64,000 nucleotides of DNA, from the sequence record NC_019521.1; one strand, 5' to 3'. This document shows, in pieces, positions 33 through 63,941 of this stretch (positions are counted from its first letter, which is position 1; each line of letters begins with the position of its first letter). Both the position numbers and the translations under genes were made by a program. The notes under the pieces were generated by a model that was not told the origin of the DNA, did no database searches, and saw only the letters and a list, made by a program, of their open reading frames with translations.

Positions 33-62
33 AAGAAACTTTAGTCAGTTTCTTAGTAATAT
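33..62 (+). promoter_or_regulatory. Class I promoter in hairpin (AGAAAC-N14-TAGTAATAT)
   Basis: Inverted repeat AAGAAACT(33-40)/AGTTTCTT(47-54). Hexamer 34-39 is one mismatch from TGAAAC. TAGTAATAT at 54-62, upstream of ORF 95. Confidence 0.6.
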
Positions 63-94
63 TCAATTATAAAAACTTAACAAAAACAAATTTA

Positions 95-1825
95 ATGGAG
101 CATGTAGTTATATTGGCTGGTGGTCTTGGTTCTAGACTTCATAAATTTACAGCTAATCTTTATCCTAAGATTTTGATTTCGATGGGTAACGAAACTATGT
201 TAGACAAACTTGTAAATTACTATTCAGTTTACAAGGATTTGAAATCGTTTAACATTGTCGTTTCGACTGAAGAAAATCAAAGACTTATATCTAATTATCT
301 GAATCGATATCATTCTAACGCTTTCGGAAAAAATACAAAAATCGATGTATTACTTTACAAAAAGTTAGATGGTTCTTTCAATACGATTTACAACCTATTC
401 AAGGGTCAGGGATTGAAGAATGTAGTATTCAATTGGTCTGATATCATTCCAACATCACATCTTCAGGTAACAAAATTATTGACTAACGAATTCAAGATAA
501 TTACTGATGTTCAAAAACGTCATAGGATGGGTATCGAATTTAGACAAGGTACAAGAACTTATGAAGTTGTCAAATATTCGAAAGATGATATGAAGGGTAA
601 CATTCCAGGATATTTCTTTATAGGTGATTTCGATAGTATATTCGATCATGTATTCGTTGATAACTTAAGACTATATCATAATCTGTCACCAGAAATAGAT
701 TTGATGGATGCTTTAGAAGCACAAATCGAAAAGAATAGATGTATAGTTTCAACTAATGAAATAGATTTTATCGATATCGGAGATGTTGAAAAATATGAAA
801 AATACATGGAAACGATATCGTTAGAAACTAGATATTTCAATAGTTTAGAAATTACTGAAAATACAGTTCGTAAGAAAGCTTTAAACGAAAAAGGTATGTC
901 AGTAATCGATAATGAATTGAATTGGTATTCTACAGTTGGTAGATTCTTTCCAGATACTAAAAATCGTCCAGCTATTCCAAGAATTTCTAATATTCAAAAG
1001 AATTATGATTATCCTCAAGGTGAACAGAAATTTCATTCTATTGAATTTTCAATGAATCGTATTGACGGTAAAACTGTTGACGAATATCTTTGGAACGATC
1101 CTTTAGAAATGTATAATGTATTACGTTTATTTGATACTGAGATTTCTAAGTTTCATAATATCGAACAATCGAATAAACCTGAAAAACGTTGGAATGAACA
1201 TCATATGCATGAATATTTCAAAGTTACATATCAACGTTTAGATGAAATATTCTTCATGTTACAAGCTGATGTACATCATTTCAAAATCGGTGATAAGATT
1301 CATAGTTTCAAAGGTGATACTATTCATTTACTTGAACATACTATGAAATATCTTTATGACGCTTATTCTAAATCTGAAGCTAATGAATGGGGATTGATTC
1401 ATGGTGACCCAAACACTTCTAACGTAATGATTTCTAATGATGGTACCGAAATGTTCTTTATCGACCCAAGAGGATTATTCGGACATTCTTTGATGTTTGG
1501 TGATATTTATTACGATTGGGCTAAATTCATATATGGACTTCAAGGTTATTCTAGATTCAATTTAGATAAGACTTTCGAATTACATTATGACGAACATAGT
1601 AAAACTATGCAAGTAGATTTCTTCAAATATGGAATCTATGATATCGATACAGTGTTACATACTGTAAAACAGATTAGACCTGATTTAGATATCAAGCGTT
1701 TACGTGTTATCGTTGGTTTGATTCATGTTAAATTAGCACAGTACATAAGAAACAATCCATCAAAAATGTACGCAACTTATTATTACGGTAAATACTTATT
1801 AGAAACAACCTTATCTGAAAAATAA
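95..1825 (+). CDS. Sugar/phospho-nucleotidyltransferase fused to APH/choline-kinase-like domain
   Basis: N-terminal VILAGGLGSRL...PK.L and DIGD (NTP_transferase). C-terminal LIHGDPNTSNV, FFIDPRG and YYDWAKF (kinase-like phosphotransferase motifs). Confidence 0.8.
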   Translation: MEHVVILAGGLGSRLHKFTANLYPKILISMGNETMLDKLVNYYSVYKDLKSFNIVVSTEENQRLISNYLNRYHSNAFGKNTKIDVLLYKKLDGSFNTIYNLFKGQGLKNVVFNWSDIIPTSHLQVTKLLTNEFKIITDVQKRHRMGIEFRQGTRTYEVVKYSKDDMKGNIPGYFFIGDFDSIFDHVFVDNLRLYHNLSPEIDLMDALEAQIEKNRCIVSTNEIDFIDIGDVEKYEKYMETISLETRYFNSLEITENTVRKKALNEKGMSVIDNELNWYSTVGRFFPDTKNRPAIPRISNIQKNYDYPQGEQKFHSIEFSMNRIDGKTVDEYLWNDPLEMYNVLRLFDTEISKFHNIEQSNKPEKRWNEHHMHEYFKVTYQRLDEIFFMLQADVHHFKIGDKIHSFKGDTIHLLEHTMKYLYDAYSKSEANEWGLIHGDPNTSNVMISNDGTEMFFIDPRGLFGHSLMFGDIYYDWAKFIYGLQGYSRFNLDKTFELHYDEHSKTMQVDFFKYGIYDIDTVLHTVKQIRPDLDIKRLRVIVGLIHVKLAQYIRNNPSKMYATYYYGKYLLETTLSEK

Positions 1826-2814
1826 TGAAATTTAAAGGAACTGACCAAAAAACTTCAAGACTGATATTCACCGACTTCGATGGTATCTTCAGTCATGATA
1901 TGCAATACTCATATATTGACAGAACTAGTAACGGTCCTGAGAAAAATGCAAAAACTGTAGCATTCGGTATTCGTGATGTTGTTAAGATTCTGAATTACGC
2001 TGGTTTCGAAATTCATATTGTTTCGGGTGATTCTACAGAAAAAGGTCAAGCTTTAACTAAGAAGTTTTTACATAACATTCATGTGGAATCTGTAAACTTT
2101 GTACCAACCGATCAAAAACTTGATAGAATTCTTGAACTAGCTAATGGTAGGGATTTCATCTGGATCGGTGAGGACTTGATTGACTTACAAATCAAGGAAT
2201 TCGCCATGAATTACATAACTACCGATAACGCTCCAAACATGTTGAAGGAATTAGCTGATGCTAACTTTAGACAAGATTATTTTTGGCACGATTTGTTATC
2301 ATATTTAATGAAAACTAAAATCTTCAATGTTGTTGACGAAGATACACATTGTCTGATAAAATACGCTTTACAGAAATACATCAAACCAGATTTCTTCAAG
2401 TTAGTAAGTTACGGATTGATTGATAAAAACTATCTAATCGAATCCTTAGAAACATATCGAGGTGTTGAAGAACTTAACGAAATCAAAGTTAACGATATTG
2501 AAGACTTCATGGATAAGATAAAAACTACAGAAGTTCTAAAAACTGTACCAGTCTTTGGTAAACTCGATTTGATTTCATCTATGAAAGTTTTAGTCAATAA
2601 CATTTGTAAACATGAACTTAAGTTTGTATATACTAAGAACGTTCATTTGTTTTCAGACACTGTAAATATCGGTGACATATTCGAAGTTCTTTCATCATTA
2701 AGATTTACAGAATCTTCTAACAGTTTCCACGATTACTATATCTACGGATTTACAAAAATCGTAGAAGGTAAGATTGAAAACATGTTAAACGAGAAGTTAG
2801 GAGCTAAATTCTAG
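1825..2814 (+). CDS. HAD-family phosphatase, KdsC/YrbI-like N-terminal domain plus unknown C-terminal half
   Basis: LIFTDFDGIFS (DxD motif I), VSGD (motif II), IGEDLIDL (motif IV). TAATG-coupled to the upstream gene. Confidence 0.7.
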   Translation: MKFKGTDQKTSRLIFTDFDGIFSHDMQYSYIDRTSNGPEKNAKTVAFGIRDVVKILNYAGFEIHIVSGDSTEKGQALTKKFLHNIHVESVNFVPTDQKLDRILELANGRDFIWIGEDLIDLQIKEFAMNYITTDNAPNMLKELADANFRQDYFWHDLLSYLMKTKIFNVVDEDTHCLIKYALQKYIKPDFFKLVSYGLIDKNYLIESLETYRGVEELNEIKVNDIEDFMDKIKTTEVLKTVPVFGKLDLISSMKVLVNNICKHELKFVYTKNVHLFSDTVNIGDIFEVLSSLRFTESSNSFHDYYIYGFTKIVEGKIENMLNEKLGAKF

Positions 2815-2839
2815 GAAACTATTATTACAGTGTAGGTAT

Positions 2840-2847
2840 TATACATA
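2840..2847 (+). promoter_or_regulatory. Putative late promoter TATACATA
   Basis: Intergenic match upstream of ORF 2916. Overlaps a weak class I match GGAAAC(2814)-N17-TATTAT. Confidence 0.55.
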
Positions 2848-2864
2848 TCTACTAATAATTAATT

Positions 2865-2890
2865 AGGGAGACATTTGATCTTGTCTCCCT
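2865..2890 (+). terminator. Hairpin in leader of glucosaminidase gene (terminator or translational element)
   Basis: AGGGAGACA-TTTGATCT-TGTCTCCCT, perfect 9-bp stem, no clear U-tract. Confidence 0.45.
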
Positions 2891-2915
2891 TCATGGTTTC
2901 ACTAAAATAAAAATA

Positions 2916-4570: not shown

Positions 4571-4616
4571 ACGAAACCCTCGGAAACTGAAACTTTCGAG
4601 GGTTTCGTAGTAATAT
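4571..4616 (+). promoter_or_regulatory. Hairpin-embedded class I promoter, family A copy 1
   Basis: ACGAAACCCTCGGAA-ACTGAAAC-TTTCGAGGGTTTCGT then AGTAATAT. TGAAAC 4588-4593, TAGTAATAT 4608-4616. Confidence 0.85.
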
Positions 4617-4644
4617 ACATTTATAACTTTATAATTTATCAACT

Positions 4645-5130
4645 ATGGGACTATCTACAAAGGTTATCATTAACCCAAAGACCAAACTATCTGAAATCAT
4701 TACATTTCTGGAAACTAAATTCAAAACTAAGGTAGAATTACGTGAAGCTGCTTCAGGTATGTTCAGCTTAATGTTTACTATAAACTTAGACAAATCCGGA
4801 ACAAAAGAACAAAGAGTTTTATACGTTTTCATGGATCGGACAACATGTCGATATGATTTCGAAATCGATGGAATTCTTATAAGTTTCAATTGCTGGGGGA
4901 TGTTTAAATCTATAGCAGATTCACTATGTAACGAATTTGGTGGAATGGTTGACTATAACGATTGTGACGATGAAGGATTCATAACTATCTGTCCTGAAAA
5001 ATTCTTTAATTCTGAAGCTCCAGAAAACAAAGAACTTGATTCTGTATTACATGAAATCATATTAGCTTTCGGTAATGACAAAGTTAATAAGTTCATAGAA
5101 TTATCTAACAAATATCAAAACGTAAAGTAA
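4645..5130 (+). CDS. Hypothetical phage protein
   Basis: 161-aa ORF after family A element, leader TCAACTATG. Confidence 0.75.
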   Translation: MGLSTKVIINPKTKLSEIITFLETKFKTKVELREAASGMFSLMFTINLDKSGTKEQRVLYVFMDRTTCRYDFEIDGILISFNCWGMFKSIADSLCNEFGGMVDYNDCDDEGFITICPEKFFNSEAPENKELDSVLHEIILAFGNDKVNKFIELSNKYQNVK

Positions 5131-7384: not shown

Positions 7385-7428
7385 GAAACCCTCAGAAACT
7401 GAAACTTCTGAGGGTTTCGTAGTATAAT
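7385..7428 (+). promoter_or_regulatory. Hairpin-embedded class I promoter, family A copy 2
   Basis: GAAACCCTCAGAA-ACTGAAAC-TTCTGAGGGTTTC. TGAAAC 7400-7405, TAGTATAAT 7420-7428. Confidence 0.88.
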
Positions 7429-10688: not shown

Positions 10689-10737
10689 ACAAAAAGTTTC
10701 ATCGTAAGTGAAACTTTTTGTCGTTTCGTAGTATAAT
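10689..10737 (+). promoter_or_regulatory. Hairpin-embedded class I promoter
   Basis: ACAAAAAGTTTCA-TCGTAAG-TGAAACTTTTTGT. TGAAAC 10709-10714, TAGTATAAT 10729-10737. Confidence 0.85.
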
Positions 10738-11555: not shown

Positions 11556-11584
11556 TGAAACAATCTAAACTTTCGTAGTATAAT
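11556..11584 (+). promoter_or_regulatory. Class I promoter (no hairpin)
   Basis: TGAAAC 11556-11561, N14, TAGTATAAT 11576-11584. Confidence 0.8.
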
Positions 11585-13304: not shown

Positions 13305-13340
13305 GTTGTAGTTGACCATTTTATATTTTTGTTATTTTTA

Positions 13341-13372
13341 AAGAACTGGATATTAACGTATCCAGTTCTTTT
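13341..13372 (+). terminator. Intrinsic terminator
   Basis: AAGAACTGGATA-TTAACG-TATCCAGTTCTT plus T run. Confidence 0.75.
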
Positions 13373-13382
13373 CGATTAGATC

Positions 13383-13427
13383 AAATCGTTATTCAGATTG
13401 AAACGATTTCATATTTGTTAGTATAAT
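13383..13427 (+). promoter_or_regulatory. Class I promoter with short inverted repeat
   Basis: AAATCGTT(13383)/AACGATTT(13402). TGAAAC 13399-13404, TAGTATAAT 13419-13427. Confidence 0.8.
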
Positions 13428-16194: not shown

Positions 16195-16506
16195 ATGGAA
16201 AATTTCAAAGAAGTTTGCGATTATCTAAAGTCTGAACTAAAAGAAGTATGTTCTTTAGATTACGAAATATATGCTTACGAAACTCTTTCAGACTTTATCG
16301 ACGATTATGATATCTTGAATTTCATTTCAATAATCAAACATAAGAATCGAGGTTTATGTAATATCGAAGTATCGGATTACAGGAAACTGACATTAACTGA
16401 TATAGCGAACAATATTCTATATAATAAAAATAGATTGGAACTTTTCGATCTATTTTCTAAAGCTAGTAAAAGAATGAGAGAATCTTGTAAAATCTTGTAC
16501 ACGTAA
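16195..16506 (+). CDS. ACP-like paralog (DD at DS position)
   Basis: IYAYETLSDFIDDYDILNFISII...LTLTDIANNI matches the register of its neighbours. Confidence 0.5.
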   Translation: MENFKEVCDYLKSELKEVCSLDYEIYAYETLSDFIDDYDILNFISIIKHKNRGLCNIEVSDYRKLTLTDIANNILYNKNRLELFDLFSKASKRMRESCKILYT

Positions 16507-16523
16507 ACATAAAATATCAAGTT

Positions 16524-16537
16524 TAGTATAATACATA
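16524..16537 (+). promoter_or_regulatory. Overlapping TAGTATAAT and AATACATA elements upstream of nrdH
   Basis: TAGTATAAT 16524-16532 (upstream GTAAAC sits at N15, imperfect). AATACATA 16530-16537. Confidence 0.5.
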
Positions 16538-19799: not shown

Positions 19800-19841
19800 A
19801 AACCCATGTAACTGAAACTTACATGGGTTTCTTAGTAAGAT
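19800..19841 (+). promoter_or_regulatory. Hairpin-embedded class I promoter, family B copy 1
   Basis: AAACCCATGTAA-CTGAAAC-TTACATGGGTTT. TGAAAC 19813-19818, TAGTAAGAT 19833-19841. Confidence 0.85.
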
Positions 19842-20563: not shown

Positions 20564-20607
20564 GAAACCCTCGGAAACTGAAACTTTCGAGGGTTTCGTA
20601 GTATAAT
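20564..20607 (+). promoter_or_regulatory. Hairpin-embedded class I promoter, family A copy 3
   Basis: 40 nt (20564-20603) identical to 4573-4612. TGAAAC 20579, TAGTATAAT 20599. Confidence 0.88.
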
Positions 20608-20635
20608 ATATACTAATAACAAATATATTTCAACT

Positions 20636-21343: not shown

Positions 21344-21387
21344 AGAAACCCATGTAACTGAAACTTACATGGGTTTCTTAGTATAAT
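21344..21387 (+). promoter_or_regulatory. Hairpin-embedded class I promoter, family B copy 2
   Basis: 38 nt (21346-21383) identical to 19800-19837. TGAAAC 21359, TAGTATAAT 21379. Confidence 0.88.
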
Positions 21388-24232: not shown

Positions 24233-24276
24233 GCAAATTATCAATCGACGTTTTGGAACAACGTTCATATCCTTCG

Positions 24277-24305
24277 AACCCTTACATTAACTTGTAAGGG
24301 TTTTT
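24277..24305 (+). terminator. Intrinsic terminator after nrdF
   Basis: AACCCTTACA-TTAACT-TGTAAGGGTT plus T run. Confidence 0.8.
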
Positions 24306-24310
24306 CTGTT

Positions 24311-24318
24311 TATACATA
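24311..24318 (+). promoter_or_regulatory. Putative late promoter TATACATA
   Basis: 4 nt before ATG 24323, opening the structural block. Confidence 0.65.
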
Positions 24319-31952: not shown

Positions 31953-31986
31953 GAAACCTGTTAGAGAAATCTAACAGGTTTCTTTG
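31953..31986 (+). terminator. Intrinsic terminator, GAAA tetraloop
   Basis: GAAACCTGTTAGA-GAAA-TCTAACAGGTTTC plus TTT. Confidence 0.8.
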
Positions 31987-31989
31987 TTT

Positions 31990-31997
31990 TATACATA
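31990..31997 (+). promoter_or_regulatory. Putative late promoter TATACATA
   Basis: Directly after the terminator, before ORF 32033. Confidence 0.65.
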
Positions 31998-35293: not shown

Positions 35294-35322
35294 GGTCGAT
35301 ATCGAAAGATATCGACCTTTCT
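35294..35322 (+). terminator. Intrinsic terminator, GAAA tetraloop
   Basis: GGTCGATATC-GAAA-GATATCGACC plus TTTCTT. Confidence 0.8.
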
Positions 35323-35328
35323 TGTTTT

Positions 35329-35336
35329 TATACATA
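35329..35336 (+). promoter_or_regulatory. Putative late promoter TATACATA
   Basis: Directly after the terminator, before ORF 35354. Confidence 0.65.
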
Positions 35337-41834: not shown

Positions 41835-41871
41835 AAACCCCATGAAATTTCATGGGGTTTTTAAGTATAAT
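41835..41871 (+). promoter_or_regulatory. Palindrome/terminator with variant class I promoter
   Basis: Perfect 26-nt palindrome AAACCCCATGAAATTTCATGGGGTTT. TGAAAT 41843, N14, AAGTATAAT 41863. Confidence 0.65.
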
Positions 41872-41879
41872 TATACATA
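41872..41879 (+). promoter_or_regulatory. Putative late promoter TATACATA
   Basis: Before ORF 41907. Confidence 0.6.
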
Positions 41880-46225: not shown

Positions 46226-46254
46226 AGTAACTTTGCATAATTCTTTAGTACTAT
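46226..46254 (+). promoter_or_regulatory. Class I promoter variant
   Basis: AGTAAC-N14-TAGTACTAT. Confidence 0.6.
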
Positions 46255-48018: not shown

Positions 48019-48064
48019 ACGAAACCCTCGGAAACTGAAACTTCTGAGGGTTTCGTAGTACTAT
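48019..48064 (+). promoter_or_regulatory. Hairpin-embedded class I promoter, family A copy 4 (chimeric arms)
   Basis: Left arm as copies 1/3 (CTCGGAA), right arm as copy 2 (TTCTGAG). TGAAAC 48036, TAGTACTAT 48056. Confidence 0.85.
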
Positions 48065-48089
48065 ACATTTATAACAAAATATTTCAACT

Positions 48090-54123: not shown

Positions 54124-54173
54124 AAAAAGACCTTGTTACTTAAATGTAACAAGGTCTTTTTGTTTAGTAATAT
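54124..54173 (+). promoter_or_regulatory. Terminator hairpin with embedded class I promoter, family D copy 1
   Basis: AAAAAGACCTTGTTAC-TTAAAT-GTAACAAGGTCTTTTT. TGTAAC 54145, N14, TAGTAATAT 54165. Confidence 0.8.
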
Positions 54174-54197: not shown

Positions 54198-57100
54198 ATG
54201 CTAAAAATTCTACATCTATCCGACATCCAAATCGAGATTCGGAGAAATTCACAAAGATATGATGAATATGCTAGCGCATTAGAAGAAGTCATATCTTATG
54301 CTAAATCAAATTTAGATATTTCAAAGGTTGTACTTTCTGGTGACATTTTCGAATTCTGTGCAGTTACTGACACTGAACGCGTGATGTTTATCAGATTCAT
54401 TAAAACTTTAGAAAGTATCGAAACTATTAATGAAATCGTTATCACTTCCGGAAATCATGATTTGAAACAACGTTTTAACGATATCAACATTTCTGGTGTG
54501 TCAGTTATCGAAAATTCGGTAATGGATTCGTTACATGAATCATTCAAGGAATCTAGTAAGATTAAAGTTCTTACGAAATCAGGTTTTTATCCTTCAAATA
54601 CTGTTGGATTAAATTGGGGTGCATGGGCACATGAACATAAGTTCGATGGAAACATTGAAAACTATAGCCCATGGGAACGTGAAGTTGTAATAGAACCTAA
54701 AAATGTTATTGAGATTTATCATGACAATTTCGCTGGTGCTATGAACTTCAATGGATTAATTCAGAAAGGTTGTGAAGATGCTAAGAGTTTTGACATGTTT
54801 AAAGCTAAAACGATATTAGCTGGACATATTCATAATCCTCAACAATTCAAATCTGATTCGAATCAAACATTTACTTACGCTTCATCATTAGTGATGCGTG
54901 ATTTCGGTGAAGGTGATTATTATCTTAACGGTAACAGGACAGTCAAAGGTTTACAGAATCATGGTTTCTATGTACATACTATCGACACTAATGATTATTC
55001 TACAGTAAGTTCAGAATTCATTCCAGTAGATTGTTATACTACTAGAGCTACATTCTTAATCGATAAGAACTTTAATTGGGAGACTATTAACGATCTAAGA
55101 TTAGATTACGTTTCGAAATACAAAAACATGTTACGTATTGTCGTAACTGGAAACGAATCTAAATATCATGAAAAATCTGCAGAAATCTTACAAGCTATTT
55201 CTAGGAACGTACCAAATCTTGAAGTATCTATTGATATTGATTCTTCAAATATCTTTTCTGAAACATCAGAAGACTTGGATTTAGAACTTGACAAATTAGT
55301 TACAGAAGAGCAAATACTCGATATCGCTATTCCATTTATCAAAAGACGTATTCGTTCTACTAAACGTATTCTTGAAGAGGATAAAGACAATGCTGAAACT
55401 ACAACAATCGAATTGTTCAAAACTCAGTTATTGAAACTACGTAAAACTATCGAACGTAATCATATTACTTTTCATAATCTTACAGTTTCGAACTTCTTAT
55501 CTTTCGAAGACAATGTAAATATAGATTTTAGTAAATTACGTTCTTTGGTTAAGATTTCTGGAACTAATGGTATCGGTAAGACTAATATCATGAAAACGTT
55601 AAAATGGATTGTTGATGATTTGATCGATGGTTCACAAGCACGTAATTCAGTGAATCAAAACGCTTTAGACGTATTTAACGATAAACGTTTAGATACGAAT
55701 TTAGTTGAATCAACTTTCGTTTTCAGTCGTAATGGTAAGAAATATACTTTGAAGAAATCGATAGAAAGATTCTTTAAATCACGTTCTAAGGATATTACTG
55801 TACATAACTGGAAAGAACATATCAAGAATCTAACGATTTCTAAAGAACTATTGATACAGTCTTCGAATTCCGAAGAAACATTAACAGATTTGGATTTGAT
55901 TCAAAATGAATTACGTGAAATCTTTGGTTCTGTACATGACATGGAAGCTTTGTTATTCACTAACGCTAATTCTTTAGAACGATTAGTTAAATCTAATCCT
56001 GATGTATTAGCTGATCAAATCATGCATCACTTAGGTTTGAGATATTTTCAGGATATGAGTAACGATTATGAAAATGTCAGAACTGAGAAATTGAAAACTT
56101 TAAGTAAACCTTCGAAATCTATAGAAGCTATGGTTTTAGAACTTGAAGATTTCAAGGAAACTAAGACAAATGGTTCTAATATCGTTAAGTCATTAACCGA
56201 ACAAAAAGAAATCGATTCTTTAAAAATAGCTACGAAGCATTCAGAGATTAACGAATTACGTGAAACTTTACATCAAGTTGAAAATCCTGAAATGTTAGAA
56301 ACTAATATCGAAAGTACTAGTAAAGATATCGAAACTAAGACTAACGATTTGGAACTTGTTCATACTGGTATGAAAACCTTGTCAGATGCTTTAGCTTTGG
56401 ATTACAAGAATTTCGATGCGATAATCGATGAATATAATTCTGAAATCAAAACTATAGAAAATGAAATATCAGAATTAAACAATTCTGTTAAGTTAGAAGC
56501 TTCGAATCTTGAAACTGAGAAACAAAAGGTTCTGACAATAACTGAATCAGTTAAATCAGAAATGAATTCTGAAATCAATAACAGATATTCTTCGAAAACT
56601 GAAACATTGAATTCAGAACTTAAATCTAAAGAAAACGAAAAGAATACAGTTCTAACGTTATTACGTGAAGCTAAACATGAGTTTGAACTTAAACGTAATC
56701 AAAAGAAATCTGAATTCGAAACTTCATTATCTGATGCTAAGAAGAAAGCGGAAACTCTTGTAGAATTAATCGATACTAATACGGGATTGATTACAGTATA
56801 TGAAACTGCTACAACTTGTAAAACTTGTGGAAATGCTATTACTGGTAAAGCTTTAGAAGAAATTCAAAATCGTAAGAATGAATGTCAAGTAAAGATTAAC
56901 GAATCTAGAAATGATTTAAATGAAGTTTACGAAGCTATCAAAATTATAGAATCTGAATTAGCTAAACCATATTATAGTATAGAACCTAATGCTTGGTTAA
57001 CTGAGAATTGTGCTGATAATTTGAAATTGGCTAGAAGTCTTACAGATACTATAACTGATATCGAAAAACAAATAAAAGAGATTAACGATGAGAAACAAAA

Positions 57101-58103
57101 AGAAATCGATTCGATTATCGAAAAGGTCAAAGAGTCTAAGAAAGTTATTGACGCTATCGAAAGTTATAAGATTAGAAAAACCTCTTATGATGGGTTCAAT
57201 CAAACTACTATCGATACAATCTCTCGTAAATCGGATCAGGTTGAAGAGATTAATGGAAAGATTTCGATAGTTAAGAAACAAAAACTTGATTACGATACTA
57301 AATCGAAATCGTTAGTTGATCTGAAATTAAAGGTTCCAGAGTTAACAAACATAATCGAAAATCTTAAATCGAAACTTGAAAGATTCAAATCTGATCTCGA
57401 AAAGATGTATCAGAATAAGGAAGTTCAGGAAAAGATAAAACTTCAAGAATTGTATTTGTCACAGATGGAATCGAATCTTAACGAAACTGTTGAAAATCTA
57501 CAAATGTATATCAGGAAAGTTGAAAACGCTACTAACAGTATCAATGATTTAGAAACTGACATACAAGATTCGATTAACTATCGTGTTATGGAATCATCGT
57601 TAGCGATATACAAAACTTTCATAGGTAAATCTGGATTGAATAAATTGATATTCGATGCAGTTTCTAAGAAGTTGAATCTTCATATGAACGATTTACTTAA
57701 GGATTCACCTTACAAGTTAGCTTTCGTAAACGGTGTTCTACATCTTATCGATTCGACTAATATCGAAACTCCTGTAACAAGAACAGCTCCAGCTTTCTCA
57801 GGTATGCAAATCATACTTGGTGGATTATCATTATTCTACGTTTTACGAAATGCTTCATTAGGTACGAAATATGATTGTGTATTTATTGATGAGATTTCAG
57901 GACCTTTGAATGACGGTAAGGAATTAACATACAAAGCTATAAATTACAAACAGTTACTAATCGATATGATAGCTAAAATGAGAGAATCTTCAAAGGTTTT
58001 CATTGTAGATCATTATCTGGATTTTTACGATGGTTCTATTCTTGAAGTTTATCCTTCTAATGATGGATCGAATATCAAGGAAATCTTAGTTCCACAAGCT
58101 TAA
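54198..58103 (+). CDS. Fused SbcD-SbcC (Mre11-Rad50; T4 gp47-gp46-like) nuclease-ATPase
   Basis: LHLSDIQ, SGDIFE, SGNHD, AGHIH (phosphoesterase). GTNGIGKT (Walker A), long coiled coil with CKTC hook, FSGMQ signature, FIDE, IVDH. Confidence 0.92.
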   Translation: MLKILHLSDIQIEIRRNSQRYDEYASALEEVISYAKSNLDISKVVLSGDIFEFCAVTDTERVMFIRFIKTLESIETINEIVITSGNHDLKQRFNDINISGVSVIENSVMDSLHESFKESSKIKVLTKSGFYPSNTVGLNWGAWAHEHKFDGNIENYSPWEREVVIEPKNVIEIYHDNFAGAMNFNGLIQKGCEDAKSFDMFKAKTILAGHIHNPQQFKSDSNQTFTYASSLVMRDFGEGDYYLNGNRTVKGLQNHGFYVHTIDTNDYSTVSSEFIPVDCYTTRATFLIDKNFNWETINDLRLDYVSKYKNMLRIVVTGNESKYHEKSAEILQAISRNVPNLEVSIDIDSSNIFSETSEDLDLELDKLVTEEQILDIAIPFIKRRIRSTKRILEEDKDNAETTTIELFKTQLLKLRKTIERNHITFHNLTVSNFLSFEDNVNIDFSKLRSLVKISGTNGIGKTNIMKTLKWIVDDLIDGSQARNSVNQNALDVFNDKRLDTNLVESTFVFSRNGKKYTLKKSIERFFKSRSKDITVHNWKEHIKNLTISKELLIQSSNSEETLTDLDLIQNELREIFGSVHDMEALLFTNANSLERLVKSNPDVLADQIMHHLGLRYFQDMSNDYENVRTEKLKTLSKPSKSIEAMVLELEDFKETKTNGSNIVKSLTEQKEIDSLKIATKHSEINELRETLHQVENPEMLETNIESTSKDIETKTNDLELVHTGMKTLSDALALDYKNFDAIIDEYNSEIKTIENEISELNNSVKLEASNLETEKQKVLTITESVKSEMNSEINNRYSSKTETLNSELKSKENEKNTVLTLLREAKHEFELKRNQKKSEFETSLSDAKKKAETLVELIDTNTGLITVYETATTCKTCGNAITGKALEEIQNRKNECQVKINESRNDLNEVYEAIKIIESELAKPYYSIEPNAWLTENCADNLKLARSLTDTITDIEKQIKEINDEKQKEIDSIIEKVKESKKVIDAIESYKIRKTSYDGFNQTTIDTISRKSDQVEEINGKISIVKKQKLDYDTKSKSLVDLKLKVPELTNIIENLKSKLERFKSDLEKMYQNKEVQEKIKLQELYLSQMESNLNETVENLQMYIRKVENATNSINDLETDIQDSINYRVMESSLAIYKTFIGKSGLNKLIFDAVSKKLNLHMNDLLKDSPYKLAFVNGVLHLIDSTNIETPVTRTAPAFSGMQIILGGLSLFYVLRNASLGTKYDCVFIDEISGPLNDGKELTYKAINYKQLLIDMIAKMRESSKVFIVDHYLDFYDGSILEVYPSNDGSNIKEILVPQA

Positions 58104-58122
58104 TTACAAATTGTTAAAATCT

Positions 58123-58170
58123 GAATCGGTTGTTACAATTAAGTAACAACCGATTCTTGTTTAGTACTAT
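58123..58170 (+). promoter_or_regulatory. Terminator hairpin with embedded class I promoter, family D copy 2
   Basis: GAATCGGTTGTTAC-AATTAA-GTAACAACCGATTC. AGTAAC 58142, N14, TAGTACTAT 58162. Confidence 0.78.
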
Positions 58171-58188
58171 ATTCTAAATCAAACAGAT

Positions 58189-58518
58189 ATGCATTATACG
58201 ATATTACTAATTTTGAATATTATTCTAATCGGTATAGTAGTTCATACTATTTCTAGTAATAAGCTAAGTATCAAAATAAAGAGAAATTTGAATAGAGAAT
58301 TCATAACATTTTCTATTACTGTAATATTAGCTTTGATATTTTTCTATCCATGGAAAGAACTTCATATGATAGAAAACGAAATCGATAAAACTTCGAAATT
58401 ATTTGATACTTTCGTTATTTATACGATCTTGTATTTTGTTATGCAGTCATTAGCTATAGTATCGTTTCTATTCTTTCAGTTACAATTACAGTATCTAAAA
58501 TCTAGAAAAATAAAATAA
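58189..58518 (+). CDS. Membrane protein (3 TM), holin/antiholin candidate
   Basis: Three hydrophobic helices and a basic C-terminal tail, upstream of the spanin-like pair. Confidence 0.55.
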   Translation: MHYTILLILNIILIGIVVHTISSNKLSIKIKRNLNREFITFSITVILALIFFYPWKELHMIENEIDKTSKLFDTFVIYTILYFVMQSLAIVSFLFFQLQLQYLKSRKIK

Positions 58519-58524
58519 TACATA
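58517..58524 (+). promoter_or_regulatory. Putative late promoter AATACATA
   Basis: 6 nt before ATG 58531. Confidence 0.5.
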
Positions 58525-58530
58525 TTTCAT

Positions 58531-58707
58531 ATGGATTCGATAACAAATTTTTCGATAATACTTTTCCTGCTGATCTTCATATCAGTGGTAATACTCCTAC
58601 TAGTCGATAGAATACCTTTCAAATTGAGAGTAATTCTATTATTACAGATTATCTTCTATTCGTTATTCATGCTATTCCATATCTTATTTCTAACAAAGAC
58701 ATTATAA
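58531..58707 (+). CDS. 58-aa two-TM protein, holin candidate (not in ORF track)
   Basis: MDSITNFSIILFLLIFISVVILLLVDRIPFKLRVILLLQIIFYSLFMLFHILFLTKTL fills the gap exactly. Confidence 0.6.
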   Translation: MDSITNFSIILFLLIFISVVILLLVDRIPFKLRVILLLQIIFYSLFMLFHILFLTKTL

Positions 58708-58711
58708 AACA

Positions 58712-59185
58712 ATGACACAATTCATTAACTATCTATCTAGTATAGATTACGAAATCTATATAGGTTACGTATACATGCTAGCATTAATCGGTATTACTAC
58801 TGTATTCTTTACAAAGAATCCCACAAAACTTATAGCTTTCATTTTAACTATATCGTTACTTTTCGTTTCAATGTTCCTATTATCAGATAACATTAAGAAA
58901 ACAGTTTCTAACGTTAAAGAACTAGAAATTAAAAACGATTCATTAAATAACTTGAATTCAGTAATACAAAATAGCAACGATTCATTAACATTGATTATTG
59001 ACAAACTTGCTATAAGAGTTGATTCAGTCGACAAAGTTATATTACGTTACAAAGAAATCATCAAACAAAATAAACAAATAAACAATGAAAAAATTATCGC
59101 TATTGATACTTTCGATTCTGATGACATTGACAGCTTCTTCTCAGATTACGAAAAACGATACTACAATATCTTTATTAAACCTTAA
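58712..59185 (+). CDS. i-spanin-like protein
   Basis: N-terminal TM helices, long coiled coil, acidic tail overlapping the next gene by 101 nt. Confidence 0.55.
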   Translation: MTQFINYLSSIDYEIYIGYVYMLALIGITTVFFTKNPTKLIAFILTISLLFVSMFLLSDNIKKTVSNVKELEIKNDSLNNLNSVIQNSNDSLTLIIDKLAIRVDSVDKVILRYKEIIKQNKQINNEKIIAIDTFDSDDIDSFFSDYEKRYYNIFIKP

Positions 59186-59543
59186 ACCAAAAACAATTAC
59201 GTATTACGATACAACTTACAAAGCTTTCACTTTAGAACAAACTAGAGAAATCGTTAAAGAATTAGCAACTCTTGAGTATCTAGCTTGGGAAAACGATCTA
59301 AGGGAAAATTGGATTACAGATTTAGAAGGTACAGTAGCTGATCAAAATACAATGATAAATCTTTATAAACAGAAATCAAGTAATTATCAGAGTATTATTT
59401 CCAATCAACAGAATATCATAAAGAACAAGGATAATATTATACATATTCATCAAAATACTATTAAACGTAAGAATAAGATAATGATCCTTGGTACTACAGT
59501 TAGTATAGCTGCAATCGTTGGTATCTTATTCGTAGTAAAATAA
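59085..59543 (+). CDS. Exported coiled-coil protein with C-terminal TM (non-lipoprotein spanin partner candidate)
   Basis: MKKLSLLILSILMTLTASS|Q signal, no Cys, C-terminal IMILGTTVSIAAIVGILFVVK. Confidence 0.55.
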   Translation: MKKLSLLILSILMTLTASSQITKNDTTISLLNLKPKTITYYDTTYKAFTLEQTREIVKELATLEYLAWENDLRENWITDLEGTVADQNTMINLYKQKSSNYQSIISNQQNIIKNKDNIIHIHQNTIKRKNKIMILGTTVSIAAIVGILFVVK

Positions 59544-59547
59544 GAAT

Positions 59548-60411
59548 ATGAAACAGAACAAAGAACTTTTTACAGAAATACGGACCATTTTCTGGGACAC
59601 TTCACAAGCTTATAATGCTAAACATAAGTTAGATTTATTAGGACCTGTCTGGTTTAACGCTTATGACATTATCGCAGCACATACACCGGAAGTTGATTTT
59701 GATGCTGTTGCTGAAAAATGTGCAAGAACTCATACGAAACCTACTGACAAATACTATGGTATGTCAAAGGAAGAAATTCTTACACAATGGAGAACTAAAT
59801 CTGACAAAGGTGCTAAATCTGGAAACGATTTAGATGCTTATAATCAAGCTCTATTTCATGATAAACCTTTACCTGAATTAGACTTAGAACTTGATATCGA
59901 AACTCTTGAGAAATATCGTAAGTTAAGAATTAACGCTGATACTTTCTATTCTAAATTGAATCAAAATCCAGCAGTTGAACTTGTAAATACTGAAGTTTGG
60001 GTAAACGAACCATTGTTTGGATTCCGTGGTAAAATGGATTTACTTCTTAACAATACATCAGCTGAATCATTATTGATAGTCGATCATAAGCAGAACGAAT
60101 TCATTTCAACAACTAACGCTTATGGTAAATTCATGACAGGTTGTCTAAGTATGTTACCCGAAACTGACTTGAATAAAATGACACTTCAACTTTACGCATA
60201 TCGATATGCTATAGAAGAGGTTGCTAAAAAGAAAGTTGGTTCCACTGCTTTAGCACATAACACCGTAAATGCTTTCAATTTGATTAGACCTACTTTCGAT
60301 TATTCTAAAGAAATGATGGAACGTATTTTTAATGACACCCGTGAATACGTTGTTAAGAAACGTAAAGCTGCTTATGATGCTAAGTTTAACGAAAATAATC
60401 AACCATTGTAA
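59548..60411 (+). CDS. PD-(D/E)xK exonuclease (RecB/Cas4-like superfamily)
   Basis: TEVWV, GFRGKMDLL, IVDHK, QLYAY motifs. Confidence 0.8.
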   Translation: MKQNKELFTEIRTIFWDTSQAYNAKHKLDLLGPVWFNAYDIIAAHTPEVDFDAVAEKCARTHTKPTDKYYGMSKEEILTQWRTKSDKGAKSGNDLDAYNQALFHDKPLPELDLELDIETLEKYRKLRINADTFYSKLNQNPAVELVNTEVWVNEPLFGFRGKMDLLLNNTSAESLLIVDHKQNEFISTTNAYGKFMTGCLSMLPETDLNKMTLQLYAYRYAIEEVAKKKVGSTALAHNTVNAFNLIRPTFDYSKEMMERIFNDTREYVVKKRKAAYDAKFNENNQPL

Positions 60412-60413
60412 AT

Positions 60414-60755
60414 ATGACATACAAAGATTTCGAAAAGATTATTAGTGTTTGGAAGGAAGACACTATTAACTATATTGCTATTACTAAGAAGCTTGGAGAA
60501 CTAGGTGTTCATCCTTCCAATTTACAAGATGTTTCGAATCCTTCAAGCATTAAGAAACATTTGATAGCTTATCTGATAACTAAATGTCGTGTAACATATT
60601 CAAGTGATTTAGTTTCGATCTATAGTTCTAAGACTATGGGATTCATCGTATACGATAAGAAGAACAATTTCATTTTCATTGATGAAATCATGATTAACGC
60701 ATTCGATCTTAGAAATCTTCCAAACGAAAAAGAATTCTATAGGAAGCTTATGTAA
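60414..60755 (+). CDS. Hypothetical protein
   Basis: 113-aa ORF. Confidence 0.7.
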   Translation: MTYKDFEKIISVWKEDTINYIAITKKLGELGVHPSNLQDVSNPSSIKKHLIAYLITKCRVTYSSDLVSIYSSKTMGFIVYDKKNNFIFIDEIMINAFDLRNLPNEKEFYRKLM

Positions 60756-60758
60756 TAC

Positions 60759-60787
60759 TGAAACATATTTCATTCGTTGAGTATAAT
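60759..60787 (+). promoter_or_regulatory. Class I promoter
   Basis: TGAAAC-N14-GAGTATAAT. Confidence 0.75.
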
Positions 60788-60823
60788 ATAAACATATCAA
60801 TATTTAAATTATACTCAACGAAC

Positions 60824-61654
60824 ATGAAATCAATTATTTCGAAAGTACTTAAGGTAGCTGAAACAGCCCAACCTAGAAATATCGAAAACGTAATGTTAAA
60901 GGTTCAGGAAGAAGTTGGAGAACTTGCTACTGAAGTTAATGTCAAATCTGGTTTCCTTGGTCAGCATAAAGCTGGAAAGGATGGAATTCTTGGAGAAGCA
61001 TGTGACTCAATCATAGCACTTCTAGATATTATTTATCTTGACAATCCAAATGTCACTGAAGAAGATATAGCAAAAACTATCAAAAAGAAAGTTAAGAAAT
61101 GGGTAAATCGTAATACGAATAACGAATCTAAGAAAGAAAGTGTATTCTCGCATTCTGATTTTCACTACAATATTATCGAAGCTTCTAAACGTAATCGTAT
61201 TGGTAAGTTGAAATTTCAAAATGATATAGTTTTCGAAAGAAATGAAGACGTAGTAACACTTTTTCATGTATCTGTTACTGAAAACAATATGTTCGAACCA
61301 GTTTATAATGAAGAATCTAAACGTATAAATGTTCCAACTGACAAAGAAATTTACTATACTATCGAATTAAGATTCAATCCTAATGATAGTATATCAATCA
61401 TTCTTAATCTTAACTATAACGATGGTAATAGTAATGTAGAAATATTTTCAAGTTTCATAGGTATTTACGAAAACTGTGATAACGTTTTGAATACATTTTT
61501 ATATGAAGAATTTGAAGACGGTATCGTTTCCAGAGAATCTGTAAACGAACTATTGAATTTACAGTTCAATCGTACTAATCATCTTGGTTTTAATGATAAC
61601 GAACTTATCAAATTATTGACACGTTCTATATTTGTTACCAAGACATACGCGTAA
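60824..61654 (+). CDS. MazG-like NTP pyrophosphohydrolase domain plus unknown C-terminal domain
   Basis: LKVQEEVGELATEV and GEACDSII (ExxE...ExxD metal ligands). Confidence 0.75.
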   Translation: MKSIISKVLKVAETAQPRNIENVMLKVQEEVGELATEVNVKSGFLGQHKAGKDGILGEACDSIIALLDIIYLDNPNVTEEDIAKTIKKKVKKWVNRNTNNESKKESVFSHSDFHYNIIEASKRNRIGKLKFQNDIVFERNEDVVTLFHVSVTENNMFEPVYNEESKRINVPTDKEIYYTIELRFNPNDSISIILNLNYNDGNSNVEIFSSFIGIYENCDNVLNTFLYEEFEDGIVSRESVNELLNLQFNRTNHLGFNDNELIKLLTRSIFVTKTYA

Positions 61655-61659
61655 TACAA

Positions 61660-62088
61660 GTGATTAAATTCAAAACTTACAAGGGTGACATAACATATTT
61701 ACCACCTCGTGGTATTTTCGTATTCGGGTCAAATACTGAAGGTCGACATAGTAAAGGAGCTGCATTAACAGCTAAATTGATGTTTGGTGCTGAATATGGG
61801 AACCCTGTAGGAAGACAGGGTCAATCTTATGCTATAATTACGAAAGACCTTACGAAATGTTTTCATCCGTCTGTTTCAAGAATTCATATAGAAAATCAAA
61901 TCCTGGATTTATACGATTATGCTATAGCACATCCTGATTTATTGTTCTTTGTACCTTACAAAGATAATCAAGAAAACTTAAATTATTACACTTCGAAAGA
62001 AATGGCTGATATGTTCAGTAGATGGAAAATTCCAGATAACATGGTTTTCGAGGAATCATTTTCTAAACTTTTAACACAATGCTACTAG
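61660..62088 (+). CDS. A1S_2505-like phage non-structural protein
   Basis: IFVFGSNTEGRHSKGAA...GRQGQSYAI signature, GTG start. Confidence 0.75.
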   Translation: MIKFKTYKGDITYLPPRGIFVFGSNTEGRHSKGAALTAKLMFGAEYGNPVGRQGQSYAIITKDLTKCFHPSVSRIHIENQILDLYDYAIAHPDLLFFVPYKDNQENLNYYTSKEMADMFSRWKIPDNMVFEESFSKLLTQCY

Positions 62089-62357
62089 ACAATAAGAAAG
62101 TATTAGCACCTGTTATTTCATTGATACTTTTTGAATTACTTAAAGAAAAACATTCTGAAGAAATCGATAAGATTTTCCAGATTTCGATAAACAAGATAAA
62201 TCATTTACAATTTATACCTTCAGTTGATTCTAGAGTAACTGTTCAATTCGATTATACGATAGCATATAAGGAAAATTGGCCTGAAAATAAACGTAAATTA
62301 AATGGTCTGGAATACGTTCAAATTCTTGATTTATTAGCATATATTGTAGGATCATGA
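62079..62357 (+). CDS. Hypothetical protein
   Basis: 92-aa ORF. Confidence 0.65.
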   Translation: MLLDNKKVLAPVISLILFELLKEKHSEEIDKIFQISINKINHLQFIPSVDSRVTVQFDYTIAYKENWPENKRKLNGLEYVQILDLLAYIVGS

Positions 62358-62641
62358 CAAAAGGATTTAAACTATTAGAAAAGGCTGATTTGGATCAAAT
62401 TAAATCTGACAAATCTGCTAACAAATTACTTGACTATATCAAGAAACATGTTCATAACGAAACTGGTCCAGATTTCGAGCTTCAAGAATTCATTGACAAT
62501 TTAGGAATCTGTTATCAACAAGCTGACGGATTTGTTTTGACTGATGGTTCTAGAAAGAATTATTCGGTTCCTTCTATTCTATCACATATCGATAGAACTG
62601 GTGAAATATCAATTACTGAACTTACAAATAATAGCATATAA
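62354..62641 (+). CDS. Hypothetical protein
   Basis: 95-aa ORF, ATGA overlap. Confidence 0.7.
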   Translation: MTKGFKLLEKADLDQIKSDKSANKLLDYIKKHVHNETGPDFELQEFIDNLGICYQQADGFVLTDGSRKNYSVPSILSHIDRTGEISITELTNNSI

Positions 62642-62961
62642 TGAAATTCGATCCTCAAATATACACAGTTTACACTTCTAATGAAGACTGTAAGGTAAAA
62701 ATTTCGTACATGATAAAAGTTTACTTGTACGAAATGTCATTATTCGGTTTAATGAAAACTTTGAAACAGAAAAAGGAGCTATTCTTATGTAAGAATGGTG
62801 ACGAAATTGTTCCATTACGTTTCGAAACGTTAGAAGAAGCTTTCAGATTCAAACGTGATTTAAACGATAAAGAAATAACATTGTATCAAGCTGACAAAAG
62901 TGATACATATTTTGTAAAAGAATTAGACATATTGTCATATTATAACTTTATAAACAACTAA
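62641..62961 (+). CDS. Hypothetical protein
   Basis: 106-aa ORF. Confidence 0.7.
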   Translation: MKFDPQIYTVYTSNEDCKVKISYMIKVYLYEMSLFGLMKTLKQKKELFLCKNGDEIVPLRFETLEEAFRFKRDLNDKEITLYQADKSDTYFVKELDILSYYNFINN

Positions 62962-63007
62962 TTATGAAAAAGAAACTAGACAGGCTTTAGTACTAAACTA
63001 AAGCAAA

Positions 63008-63181
63008 ATGAAAATAGATAAATTCGAAACGAATCCAAAGGCTATTCGTTTACATAACAAAAGATTTCAAAGATGTGAATACTGTCCACCTAATAAGGGT
63101 TGTAACGTTCAAAGGGATAATGACTATAAAGGTTGGAAATTCTGGAACAAGACAAGAAAACAGTATCAACGTCATAACTAA
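63008..63181 (+). CDS. 57-aa basic Cys-motif protein (not in ORF track)
   Basis: MKIDKFETNPKAIRLHNKRFQRCEYCPPNKGCNVQRDNDYKGWKFWNKTRKQYQRHN. The stop abuts the next hairpin. Confidence 0.7.
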   Translation: MKIDKFETNPKAIRLHNKRFQRCEYCPPNKGCNVQRDNDYKGWKFWNKTRKQYQRHN

Positions 63182-63225
63182 AAGAAAGCTCGTTAATGAA
63201 ACTTAACGAGCTTTCTTAGTATAAT
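63182..63225 (+). promoter_or_regulatory. Hairpin-embedded class I promoter; loop is exactly TGAAAC
   Basis: AAGAAAGCTCGTTAA-TGAAAC-TTAACGAGCTTTCTT. TAGTATAAT 63217-63225. Confidence 0.88.
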
Positions 63226-63250
63226 ATTACTTTAACAAATCATATCAATT

Positions 63251-63463
63251 ATGAAAACTGAATTTCAAGAAGCTGTTAAACAAGAATTAGAAAACCTTCT
63301 AAACGATAAAGAAACACTCAAGTCAATTTTACAAGATAGATTAACTATCGAAACTGAGAAAGAAACAAGTTACGGATTTCATAGTGATTCTAATCATGTG
63401 ACAGTAAAACTTAGATTAGATGGTGAAGTTATATCATCAGATTCGTTTCTTATACGAACTTAA
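63251..63463 (+). CDS. Small hypothetical protein
   Basis: 70-aa single-gene unit between two promoters. Confidence 0.7.
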   Translation: MKTEFQEAVKQELENLLNDKETLKSILQDRLTIETEKETSYGFHSDSNHVTVKLRLDGEVISSDSFLIRT

Positions 63464-63472
63464 AAATAATTG

Positions 63473-63510
63473 TTCAGAAACTGAAACTTTTGATAAAACT
63501 GTAGTACTAT
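63473..63510 (+). repeat. Class I promoter, family C copy 1 (34-nt direct repeat)
   Basis: TTCAGAAACTGAAACTTTTGATAAAACTGTAGTA identical to 63904-63937. TAGTACTAT 63502. Confidence 0.85.
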
Positions 63511-63529
63511 ACATTTAAATCAAAATCAT

Positions 63530-63880
63530 ATGTCAACTGTATATATCATTCAATATTCGACAAATCGTTACAACTTACATAAAATCTCTCCAGTAGATTT
63601 TGACGGTTTCGGTTTTCTTAGAGCATGTAATATCGATATTCCGAGCTTGATGAAAGCTGGTTTCAAATCGATTCGTTCTTTAATCAAAGAATCTTCAGAG
63701 AATGGGAAATCTTTAGTTTCATTGAAACTTAACAGATCGATTCCTAAATCGGTTGTCAAAAGTCTTGAAGAAAAATCTAACAGTTTCTCAGTCCCTTATT
63801 GTGAGATTTGCATTGAACATGAAATTGATGGTGAAATCTTCAAAGCTTATTTCAAAATAACTAAATCTCGTTTAAAATAG
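63530..63880 (+). CDS. Hypothetical protein
   Basis: 116-aa ORF flanked by family C repeats. Confidence 0.7.
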   Translation: MSTVYIIQYSTNRYNLHKISPVDFDGFGFLRACNIDIPSLMKAGFKSIRSLIKESSENGKSLVSLKLNRSIPKSVVKSLEEKSNSFSVPYCEICIEHEIDGEIFKAYFKITKSRLK

Positions 63881-63903
63881 TTTCATTTATTTGAAACTTT
63901 TTA

Positions 63904-63941
63904 TTCAGAAACTGAAACTTTTGATAAAACTGTAGTATAAT
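63904..63941 (+). repeat. Class I promoter, family C copy 2
   Basis: TGAAAC 63913, TAGTATAAT 63933. Confidence 0.85.

Follow-up and report, generated by a model that had tools for sequence, protein, structure and literature searches.

The 64,000-nucleotide (nt) stretch analyzed here, referred to as the window, is the final 64 kb of the record of Sphingomonas phage PAU (NC_019521 / JQ362498, 219,372 bp). Over a 7-kb piece of the window, the identity with this record is 100%, and position 1 of the window is position 155,373 of the record. The intergenic regions contain repeated units in which a two-part promoter motif, TGAAAC followed by TAGTAnnAT, overlaps with an inverted repeat, the hexamer lying in the loop of the predicted hairpin at many of these sites. 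The remaining PAU genome was taken in as well, and the motif was judged genome-wide.

Nearly all PAU genes are located on the + strand and only two are annotated on the - strand. By its gp23-type capsid protein and its T4-type portal protein, PAU is a distant member of the T4 superfamily. The host strain HER1398 was reclassified as a Sphingobacterium and thus belongs to the Bacteroidetes (PMC3738902), which agrees with the observation that phages with a related capsid protein all infect Bacteroidetes. A Shine-Dalgarno sequence precedes the start codon in just 12 of 290 PAU genes, which also fits Bacteroidetes. The search with Rfam as a database matched no family in the window.

The class-A promoter motif

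The TGAAAC/TAGTAnnAT promoter type, named class A in the following, has the consensus AAC-TGAAAC-TTT, N11, tcg-TAGTAnnAT-A, with 17 nt separating TGAAAC from TAnnAT. The exact pattern TGAAAC-N14-TAGTAnnAT was detected 13 times in the window, in all cases on the + strand, whereas 0.03 matches are expected from shuffled sequences. In the whole PAU genome it is found 32 times on the + strand and once on the - strand, and directly downstream of this single minus-strand site lies gp87, the terminase gene, which is one of the two genes annotated on that strand. A genome scan with a two-block profile (AAC-TGAAAC-TTT and tcg-TAGTAnnAT-a) resulted in 58-63 matches on the + strand versus 1-5 on the - strand. 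The sites are nearly all intergenic, 15-90 nt before an ATG, and the variants of the -35 hexamer nearly always end in AAC (TGAAAC, TGTAAC, AGTAAC, AGAAAC, GGAAAC and TTAAAC).

All 18 sites listed in the preliminary description of the window are present, each with a hexamer, 14 nt and then (T/G/A)AGTAnnAT. The spacing of exactly 14 nt that was given there is right when counted up to the T of TAGTA, but not when counted to AGTA. Weaker sites at 16503, 2814, 50382 and 53868 were absent from that list.

With two elements at a fixed spacing of 17 ± 1 nt, an orientation following the genes and a short distance to the start codons, the class-A motif behaves as a bipartite promoter of the sigma-70-family type, from which transcription would be initiated. 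A generic sigma-70 scan gave no overall enrichment (107 found, 113 expected). Among the genes behind class-A sites are ORFans and those for a topoisomerase, a helicase, the ribonucleotide reductase (RNR) operon, DNA polymerase, ligase, a single-stranded DNA-binding protein, a MazG-like protein and a sigma factor. Because it drives ORFans together with genes of replication and nucleotide metabolism, class A probably belongs to the early or middle promoters. Downstream of the promoter, class-A genes show a further element, A.ATTTA, 3′ of TAGTAnnAT, and the sequence TTTCAA(C/T)TATG precedes the start codon in 18 of 290 genes, many of them class-A-driven (e.g., window 4636-4647, 20627-20638 and 48081-48092). 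Due to these elements, the conserved cassette takes up the stretch between the upstream stop codon and the downstream start.

Hairpins at class-A promoters

In the window, the following composite units of hairpin and class-A promoter were found, the last line giving a variant of the register:

4571..4616 (+): composite unit gp220/gp221; hairpin 4571-4608 of 15 bp with an 8-nt loop, -35 TGAAAC 4588-4593 in the loop, TAGTAATAT 4608-4616; free energy (dG) -23.7 kcal/mol, z -6.5
7385..7428 (+): composite unit gp226/gp227; hairpin 7385-7418 of 13 bp, -35 7400-7405, TAGTATAAT 7420-7428
19800..19841 (+): composite unit after NrdE (gp246); hairpin 19800-19830 of 12 bp with CCCATGTAA stem, -35 19813-19818, TAGTAAGAT 19833-19841; z -4.4
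20564..20607 (+): composite unit gp247/gp248; hairpin 20564-20597, -35 20579-20584, TAGTATAAT 20599-20607
21344..21387 (+): composite unit gp248/gp249; hairpin 21344-21378 of 14 bp, -35 21359-21364, TAGTATAAT 21379-21387
48019..48064 (+): composite unit gp272/gp273; hairpin 48019-48056 of 15 bp with one G.U, -35 48036-48041, TAGTACTAT 48056-48064
54124..54173 (+): composite unit upstream of gp288 (metallophosphoesterase/SbcC-like); hairpin 54124-54161 of 14-16 bp, TGTAAC 54145-54150 across loop and 3′ arm, TAGTAATAT 54165-54173; z -7.8
58123..58170 (+): composite unit gp288/gp289; hairpin 58123-58156 of 12-14 bp, AGTAAC 58142-58147 across loop and 3′ arm, TAGTACTAT 58162-58170
63182..63225 (+): composite unit gp300/gp301; hairpin 63182-63217 of 15 bp with AGCTCGTTAA stem and a 6-nt loop equal to the hexamer, -35 63197-63202, TAGTATAAT 63217-63225; z -7.9
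10689..10737 (+): register variant gp233/gp234; 14-bp hairpin 10689-10721 with the -35 10709-10714 inside the 3′ arm, TAGTATAAT 10729-10737

Across the genome, a strong hairpin was found at 23 of 63 profile sites. Among random positions the proportion is 0.5% and among intergenic positions 3.9%, and hairpin strength follows a bimodal distribution. Three further hairpin sites with variant hexamers were found by eye. The strong intergenic hairpins of PAU amount to 67, of which about 24-26 hold the -35 hexamer in the loop and 2 in the 3′ arm, and 3 are found 6-14 nt upstream of the hexamer. The register hardly varies: the 3′ arm directly follows the hexamer, its end lies -1 to +5 nt before TAGTA, and the usual loop of 7-8 nt consists of (A)C plus TGAAAC. 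The stems comprise 10-16 bp, with dG values of -14 to -24 kcal/mol and z values of -4.4 to -7.9, whereas the folding of hairpin-less class-A promoters is no better than that of shuffled sequences.

The statement of the preliminary description that the hexamer sits in the loop or at the junction of loop and 3′ arm "in most cases" is just true, for 10-11 of the 18 sites. A strong stem of 11-16 bp with the hexamer in this position is present at 10 of them (4588, 7400, 19813, 20579, 21359, 41843, 48036, 54145, 58142 and 63197), whereas 7 (34, 11556, 13399, 46226, 60759, 63482 and 63913) have no stem or weak AT-rich pairing only.

The pairing itself shows signs of selection. At least 12 unrelated stem sequences occur in the common register, and the four stems quoted earlier are correct. 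In the largest stem family (12 copies), 6 base pairs are changed on both sides, which is matched by 0 of 500 shuffles, and slid registers show no such changes; the 12 core pairs of this family are 100% paired in every copy. The 26 stems contain 15 imperfections, at least 7 of them independent; read on the coding strand, each is a G.T and none is an A.C. G.U is tolerated in RNA, whereas a cruciform or a template-strand hairpin would need A.C mismatches. Since the imperfections are exclusively G.T on the coding strand, what is selected would be the sense-strand RNA that polymerases coming from upstream produce, and the data point to selection of the pairing at the level of the transcribed sense RNA. 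The view that differing stems in a fixed register reflect a selected architecture is supported by the unrelated stems, the compensatory changes and the G.U-only imperfections.

The remaining class-A promoters of the window have no hairpin in the loop register:

34..62 (+): hairpin-less class-A promoter AGAAAC ... TAGTAATAT, overlapping the end of gp214, upstream of gp215
11556..11584 (+): hairpin-less class-A promoter upstream of gp237; z -0.2
13340..13427 (+): hairpin-less class-A promoter upstream of the DNA helicase gene gp239; a separate hairpin 13340-13371, then -35 13399-13404 and TAGTATAAT 13419-13427
16503..16532 (+): class-A promoter upstream of NrdH-like gp244 and the RNR operon; GTAAAC, spacer +1, TAGTATAAT 16524-16532
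46226..46254 (+): class-A promoter AGTAAC ... TAGTACTAT upstream of epimerase gene gp271; weak 7-bp pairing only
60759..60787 (+): class-A promoter TGAAAC ... GAGTATAAT upstream of MazG-like gp295; no loop hairpin, z 0.4
63482..63510 (+): class-A promoter upstream of gp302; 6-bp AT-rich pairing only
63913..63941 (+): class-A promoter at the record end, facing the sigma-factor gene gp1 across the record junction; synteny with a relative (contig L130) supports continuity

Other inverted repeats were observed at some of the class-A units. A 20-bp inverted repeat with a 10-nt loop (window 60773-60822) starts in the -10 region of promoter 60759 and extends as far as the gp295 start codon. As its 5′ arm is mostly located upstream of the expected transcription start, it may represent an operator at the DNA level rather than an mRNA structure. 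Some units elsewhere in the genome share a longer 5′ untranslated region with a small hairpin of its own, e.g., CCGTTAC...GTAACG or AATTACTTTAT...ATAAAGTAATT (L003:40609-40660, L004:46775-46830; L002:26343-26370, L003:41517-41542), and these are possible leader structures.

Proposed termination and alternative explanations

The class-A stems begin 15-40 nt past the upstream stop codon and thus place a GC-rich hairpin where intrinsic (Rho-independent) terminators are found. They resemble such terminators in the GC core, the 5′ A-tract, a rather weak 3′ T-run and the pairing in the sense RNA, and they share the form of the other intergenic hairpins of PAU, namely A-tract, GC core, short loop, GC core and T-tract (AAAcc...ggTTT). 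They differ from intrinsic terminators in that the U-tract is broken after 3-4 U by the CGTAGTA of the promoter and that the loop, because it holds the -35 element, is unusually large (7-8 nt). According to a tally of the site table, a loop hairpin is present at 21 of 27 sites with such room (15-40 nt) after the upstream gene, two more having a shifted form, and at just 2 of ~36 sites abutting or inside the upstream open reading frame.

The closest known system is the PeSL (promoter-early stem-loop) cassette of T4-type phages, described for RB49/phi1, T4/PST and KVP40/nt-1 (Arbiol et al., 2010, PMC2839356; Comeau et al., 2014, PMC4122927). In reporter assays, PeSL stem-loops terminate and their promoters fire (PMC2839356). 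Both systems consist of repeated intergenic units with a consensus promoter and a stable stem-loop that acts, in PAU by prediction, on transcription from upstream. In PAU, 24-26 units combine a repeated intergenic -35/-10 consensus with an adjacent or overlapping stable stem-loop and correspond to PeSL as these are defined by structure. PeSL and PAU units also have in common that they extend between upstream stop codon and downstream start, contain G-T pairs in the stems, occur in several registers and seem to be dense beside ORFans. In contrast to PeSL, a single register is dominant in PAU (hexamer in the loop, 3′ arm in the spacer; ~24 of ~29 hairpin-associated promoters), the promoter does not follow the primary-sigma consensus of the host, the host belongs to the Bacteroidetes, Shine-Dalgarno sequences are missing, and the stems are built of A-tract and GC core instead of polyG/polyC. 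The preliminary description, which knew of no case with the -35 element inside the loop, overstated the novelty in this respect, as PeSL subclasses with the stem-loop between -35 and -10 or overlapping the -35 are listed by Arbiol et al. (2010, PMC2839356). An overlap of stem-loop and -35 is thus already known; what is new is the stereotyped register, the non-host promoter consensus and the phage and host lineage.

Judged from these sequence features, the units are rather probably composite intrinsic-terminator/promoter cassettes of PAU, in which the hairpin would end transcription and a sigma factor would read the promoter. The earlier proposal of one unit of ~45 nt that ends one transcript and starts the next is plausible in silico, the motif being promoter-like and the hairpin terminator- or attenuator-like. 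In such a cassette, the usual PAU terminator would be laid over the promoter wherever there are at least ~15 nt between the end of the upstream gene and the -35. The 5′ arm would be located in unconstrained upstream DNA, the loop would be formed by the -35 hexamer, the 3′ arm would fill the unconstrained spacer, and the TTTCG/TAGTA region of the promoter would supply the start of a rather weak U-tract. The hairpin would form only in RNA begun at upstream promoters, where it would stop or attenuate read-through and may protect the 3′ end. By stopping or attenuating read-through, it would allow each gene or small operon to be insulated and restarted. Placing the -35 in the loop would be the most compact overlap that keeps both signals intact, in line with a tendency of PAU to pack terminators tight against promoters of both classes, class A and the late-type class described below.

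Several observations weigh against this interpretation. The U-tract is poor, typically TTTCGTAGTA, with a mean of 5.3 T per 10 nt versus 7.2 for the hairpins before the late-type motif, and most class-A hairpins were called on the minus strand only or missed by a simple terminator scan. Copies of many units fall in two stem families, so that the repetition may partly result from duplication and not from independent selection. Class A is unlike the Bacteroidetes primary-sigma (sigma-A) consensus, i.e., TTTG at -33 and TAnnTTTG at -7 (PMC9723704). Furthermore, no class-A motif could be found in ~70 kb read from the nearest relatives, which were identified as Logan assemblies via the capsid protein and gp1, and the architecture is not conserved across species there. 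On the + strand (40 kb scanned), a rule of at least 5 T in 8 nt is passed by 1 of the 6 loop-hairpin units there (58123-58156). The class-A hairpins may be leaky attenuators or chiefly 3′-end stabilizers.

The minus-strand terminator calls are located at 7385-7418, 19800-19830, 54124-54161 and 63182-63217 and are explained by the A-rich tract 5′ of the stems. These four hairpins could also block antisense transcription, as bidirectional terminators. Motif scans of IMG/VR and GTDB genomes revealed class-A clusters in PAU alone among the matches listed, the others being single chance matches, and no class-A motif was found in 50 kb each of Chryseobacterium phage MA9V-1 and Tenacibaculum phage PTm1.

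The weak U-tracts, the RNA-sense polarity of the pairing and the location just past stop codons would likewise be expected if the hairpins were stabilizers or processing sites of RNA 3′ ends, with transcripts that read through and are trimmed or cut at the stem, the mRNA being shielded from 3′ exonucleases. This explanation is considered unlikely, as the stems share their A-tract/GC-core/T-tract form with hairpins with good T-tails elsewhere in the genome and the PeSL stem-loops terminate in reporters (PMC2839356); it is compatible with termination and the two are not exclusive.

Quite unlikely, too, is a main role as recombination modules, i.e., PeSL-like mobile cassettes that shuffle ORFans with the hairpin as recombination signal. 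Near-identical copies of 45-60 nt are spread over the genome, but the likeness between copies rarely reaches beyond the unit, and the at least 12 unrelated stems are not all copies of each other. The syntenic contig L130 lacks the ORFans gp289-291 and gp297-302, which are located next to dense units, but has the genes flanking them; the relatives, at ~50-60% amino acid identity, are however too divergent for breakpoint mapping. Given the PeSL precedent and these data, PeSL-type shuffling in PAU is only suggestive.

The preliminary description had also considered a cruciform switch or an N4-like hairpin promoter, i.e., a DNA-level structure (cruciform or single-strand hairpin) that is needed for promoter recognition or switches it. 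The inverted repeats are centered on the -35, and odd DNA behavior is conceivable given the heavy modification reported for PAU DNA (PMC7824862). This reading is nevertheless highly improbable and was rejected. The same TGAAAC + TAGTAnnAT logo is found at the 33 of 55 good class-A sites (~60% of the promoters) that have no hairpin, which makes the hairpin dispensable for recognition. Other registers exist, with the hairpin wholly upstream at three promoters and shifted at two, and a G.T on the coding strand is an A.C mismatch on the template strand and therefore of the wrong polarity. Promoters of N4 consist of a 5-7 bp stem and a 3-nt loop on the template strand and are used by a virion single-subunit RNA polymerase. 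They have the inverted repeat at a phage promoter in common with PAU, in which the stems are longer (10-16 bp), the loops are long (7-8 nt), the polarity is that of the coding strand, most promoters are hairpin-less, and no phage RNA polymerase domain was recognized in the eight proteins tested, seven of which have more than 850 amino acids. It is barely conceivable that a dimeric DNA-binding regulator uses the palindromes as operators and binds over the -35, and this candidate was rejected since, despite the dyad symmetry centered on a promoter element, the arm sequences are unrelated between families and the pairing is kept, a signature of structure and not of sequence-specific binding.

Late-type motif, sigma factor gp1 and host-type promoters

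A second motif, tTATACATAT (TATACATA), is present 50 times on the + strand and 2 times on the - strand of the genome and has no -35 element. Structural genes (portal, protease, major capsid, sheath and baseplate) follow it at a distance of 12-80 nt, and often a hairpin with a T-rich tail lies 5-14 nt before it. The motif is also conserved in the nearest relatives, upstream of the corresponding genes. In the window it occurs at 23208, 24311, 27785, 31990, 35329, 39146, 41872 and 43066, with ~40 more elsewhere in the genome. It is probably a late promoter class. The late promoters of T4 (TATAAATA, -10 only) likewise lack a -35 and precede structural genes; the octamer of PAU is different, and no homolog of gp55, gp33 or gp45 was recognized by BLAST and phmmer. 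The following units combine a hairpin with this motif:

24276..24318 (+): comparison unit upstream of gp255; hairpin 24276-24303, T-rich tail, then late-type TATACATA 24311-24318
31953..31997 (+): comparison unit upstream of gp264; hairpin 31953-31982, T-rich tail, then TATACATA 31990-31997
35294..35336 (+): comparison unit upstream of gp265; hairpin 35294-35317, T-rich tail, then TATACATA 35329-35336
41835..41879 (+): hairpin 41835-41860 and weak class-A-like TGAAAT/AAGTATAAT upstream of gp267, with the lowest promoter score (11.5); late-type TATACATA 41872-41879 directly after; more likely a terminator with a late promoter than a class-A unit

The only sigma factor recognized in PAU is gp1 (362 amino acids; L002:94-1182), which belongs to the sigma-70 family (TIGR02937, 52.8 bits versus a cut-off of 42.9; regions 2 to 4). 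Its region 2 aligns best with primary (RpoD/SigA) sigma factors, which also make up the sequence matches in the PDB. Searches for T4 gp55, gp45 and RpbA by tblastn and phmmer, together with a local sigma hidden Markov model, gave nothing convincing beyond gp1. The RefSeq label of gp1 is also "internal capsid vertex protein (mango) subunit 2", and gp1 would be a sigma factor carried in the virion if it is indeed packaged.

Candidates for the factor that reads class A are gp1 and a host factor. A sigma factor with region 4, such as gp1, fits a bipartite promoter, and gp1 was first favored as the reader of class A. This assignment was later weakened, because the sigma factor and the late-type motif are conserved in the relatives and class A is not, which argues for gp1 serving the late-type motif instead. 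The gp1 gene is preceded by a class-A promoter and TATACATA in PAU and by a host-type promoter in L130.

The promoter of the Bacillus subtilis extracytoplasmic function (ECF) sigma factor SigW has the sequence TGAAAC-N16-CGTA. ECF-type promoters and class A resemble each other in the AAC at the end of the -35 and the GTA 16 nt downstream, which is a resemblance only. They differ in the -10, which in PAU is the 9-bp TAGTAnnAT and not CGT(A/C), and gp1 is nearest to primary sigma factors.

Host-type promoters are missing from the intergenic regions of PAU, in which no match to TTG-N17-21-TAnnTTTG was found on the + strand. A TAnnTTT(A/G) box 8 nt into the -10 element is weak and present at 11 of 55 class-A sites. 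In the nearest relatives (Logan contigs L128-L131 and L252; capsid identity 77-82%, sigma identity 62-63%), matches to TTG-N17-21-TAnnTTTG are 3 to 5 times as dense, and among them are textbook copies that directly follow terminators or precede the sigma gene. The sigma-A promoters of the relatives, which follow terminator hairpins and precede early-looking genes including that of the sigma factor, thus occupy the same niche as class A in PAU. In PAU, it seems, host-type promoters have been replaced entirely.

The gene order gp288 ... gp296 ... sigma gp1 ... gp11-13 is unbroken in a contig of a relative (window 54198-64000 versus L130:185-11119). Due to this shared gene order, the PAU record was opened inside a co-linear region, as would fit a genome that is circularly permuted or was opened at an arbitrary point.

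The constant register with the -35 in the loop may be under selection for something beyond compactness, namely a terminate-and-reinitiate relay, in which the hairpin would free the core RNA polymerase onto the next promoter and a phage sigma factor (candidate gp1) would re-program the core. That PAU has no host-type promoters would fit this. Such a relay is very doubtful; if true, it would free a Bacteroidetes phage from its host's primary sigma factor as soon as infection starts.

The analysis provides a first regulatory map of PAU, a poorly studied 219-kb jumbo phage, with ~60 bipartite promoters, ~45 late-type -10-only promoters and ~65 intergenic hairpins. The idea of promoter-terminator cassettes, which originates from T4-type coliphages, is extended to a very distant branch, in which the overlap is unusually stereotyped. 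Since the 5′ arm lies outside the promoter, the units offer clean natural material for testing termination apart from initiation, and they may serve as compact insulator parts in Bacteroidetes genetics. The missing host-type promoters raise the question of how PAU starts transcription.

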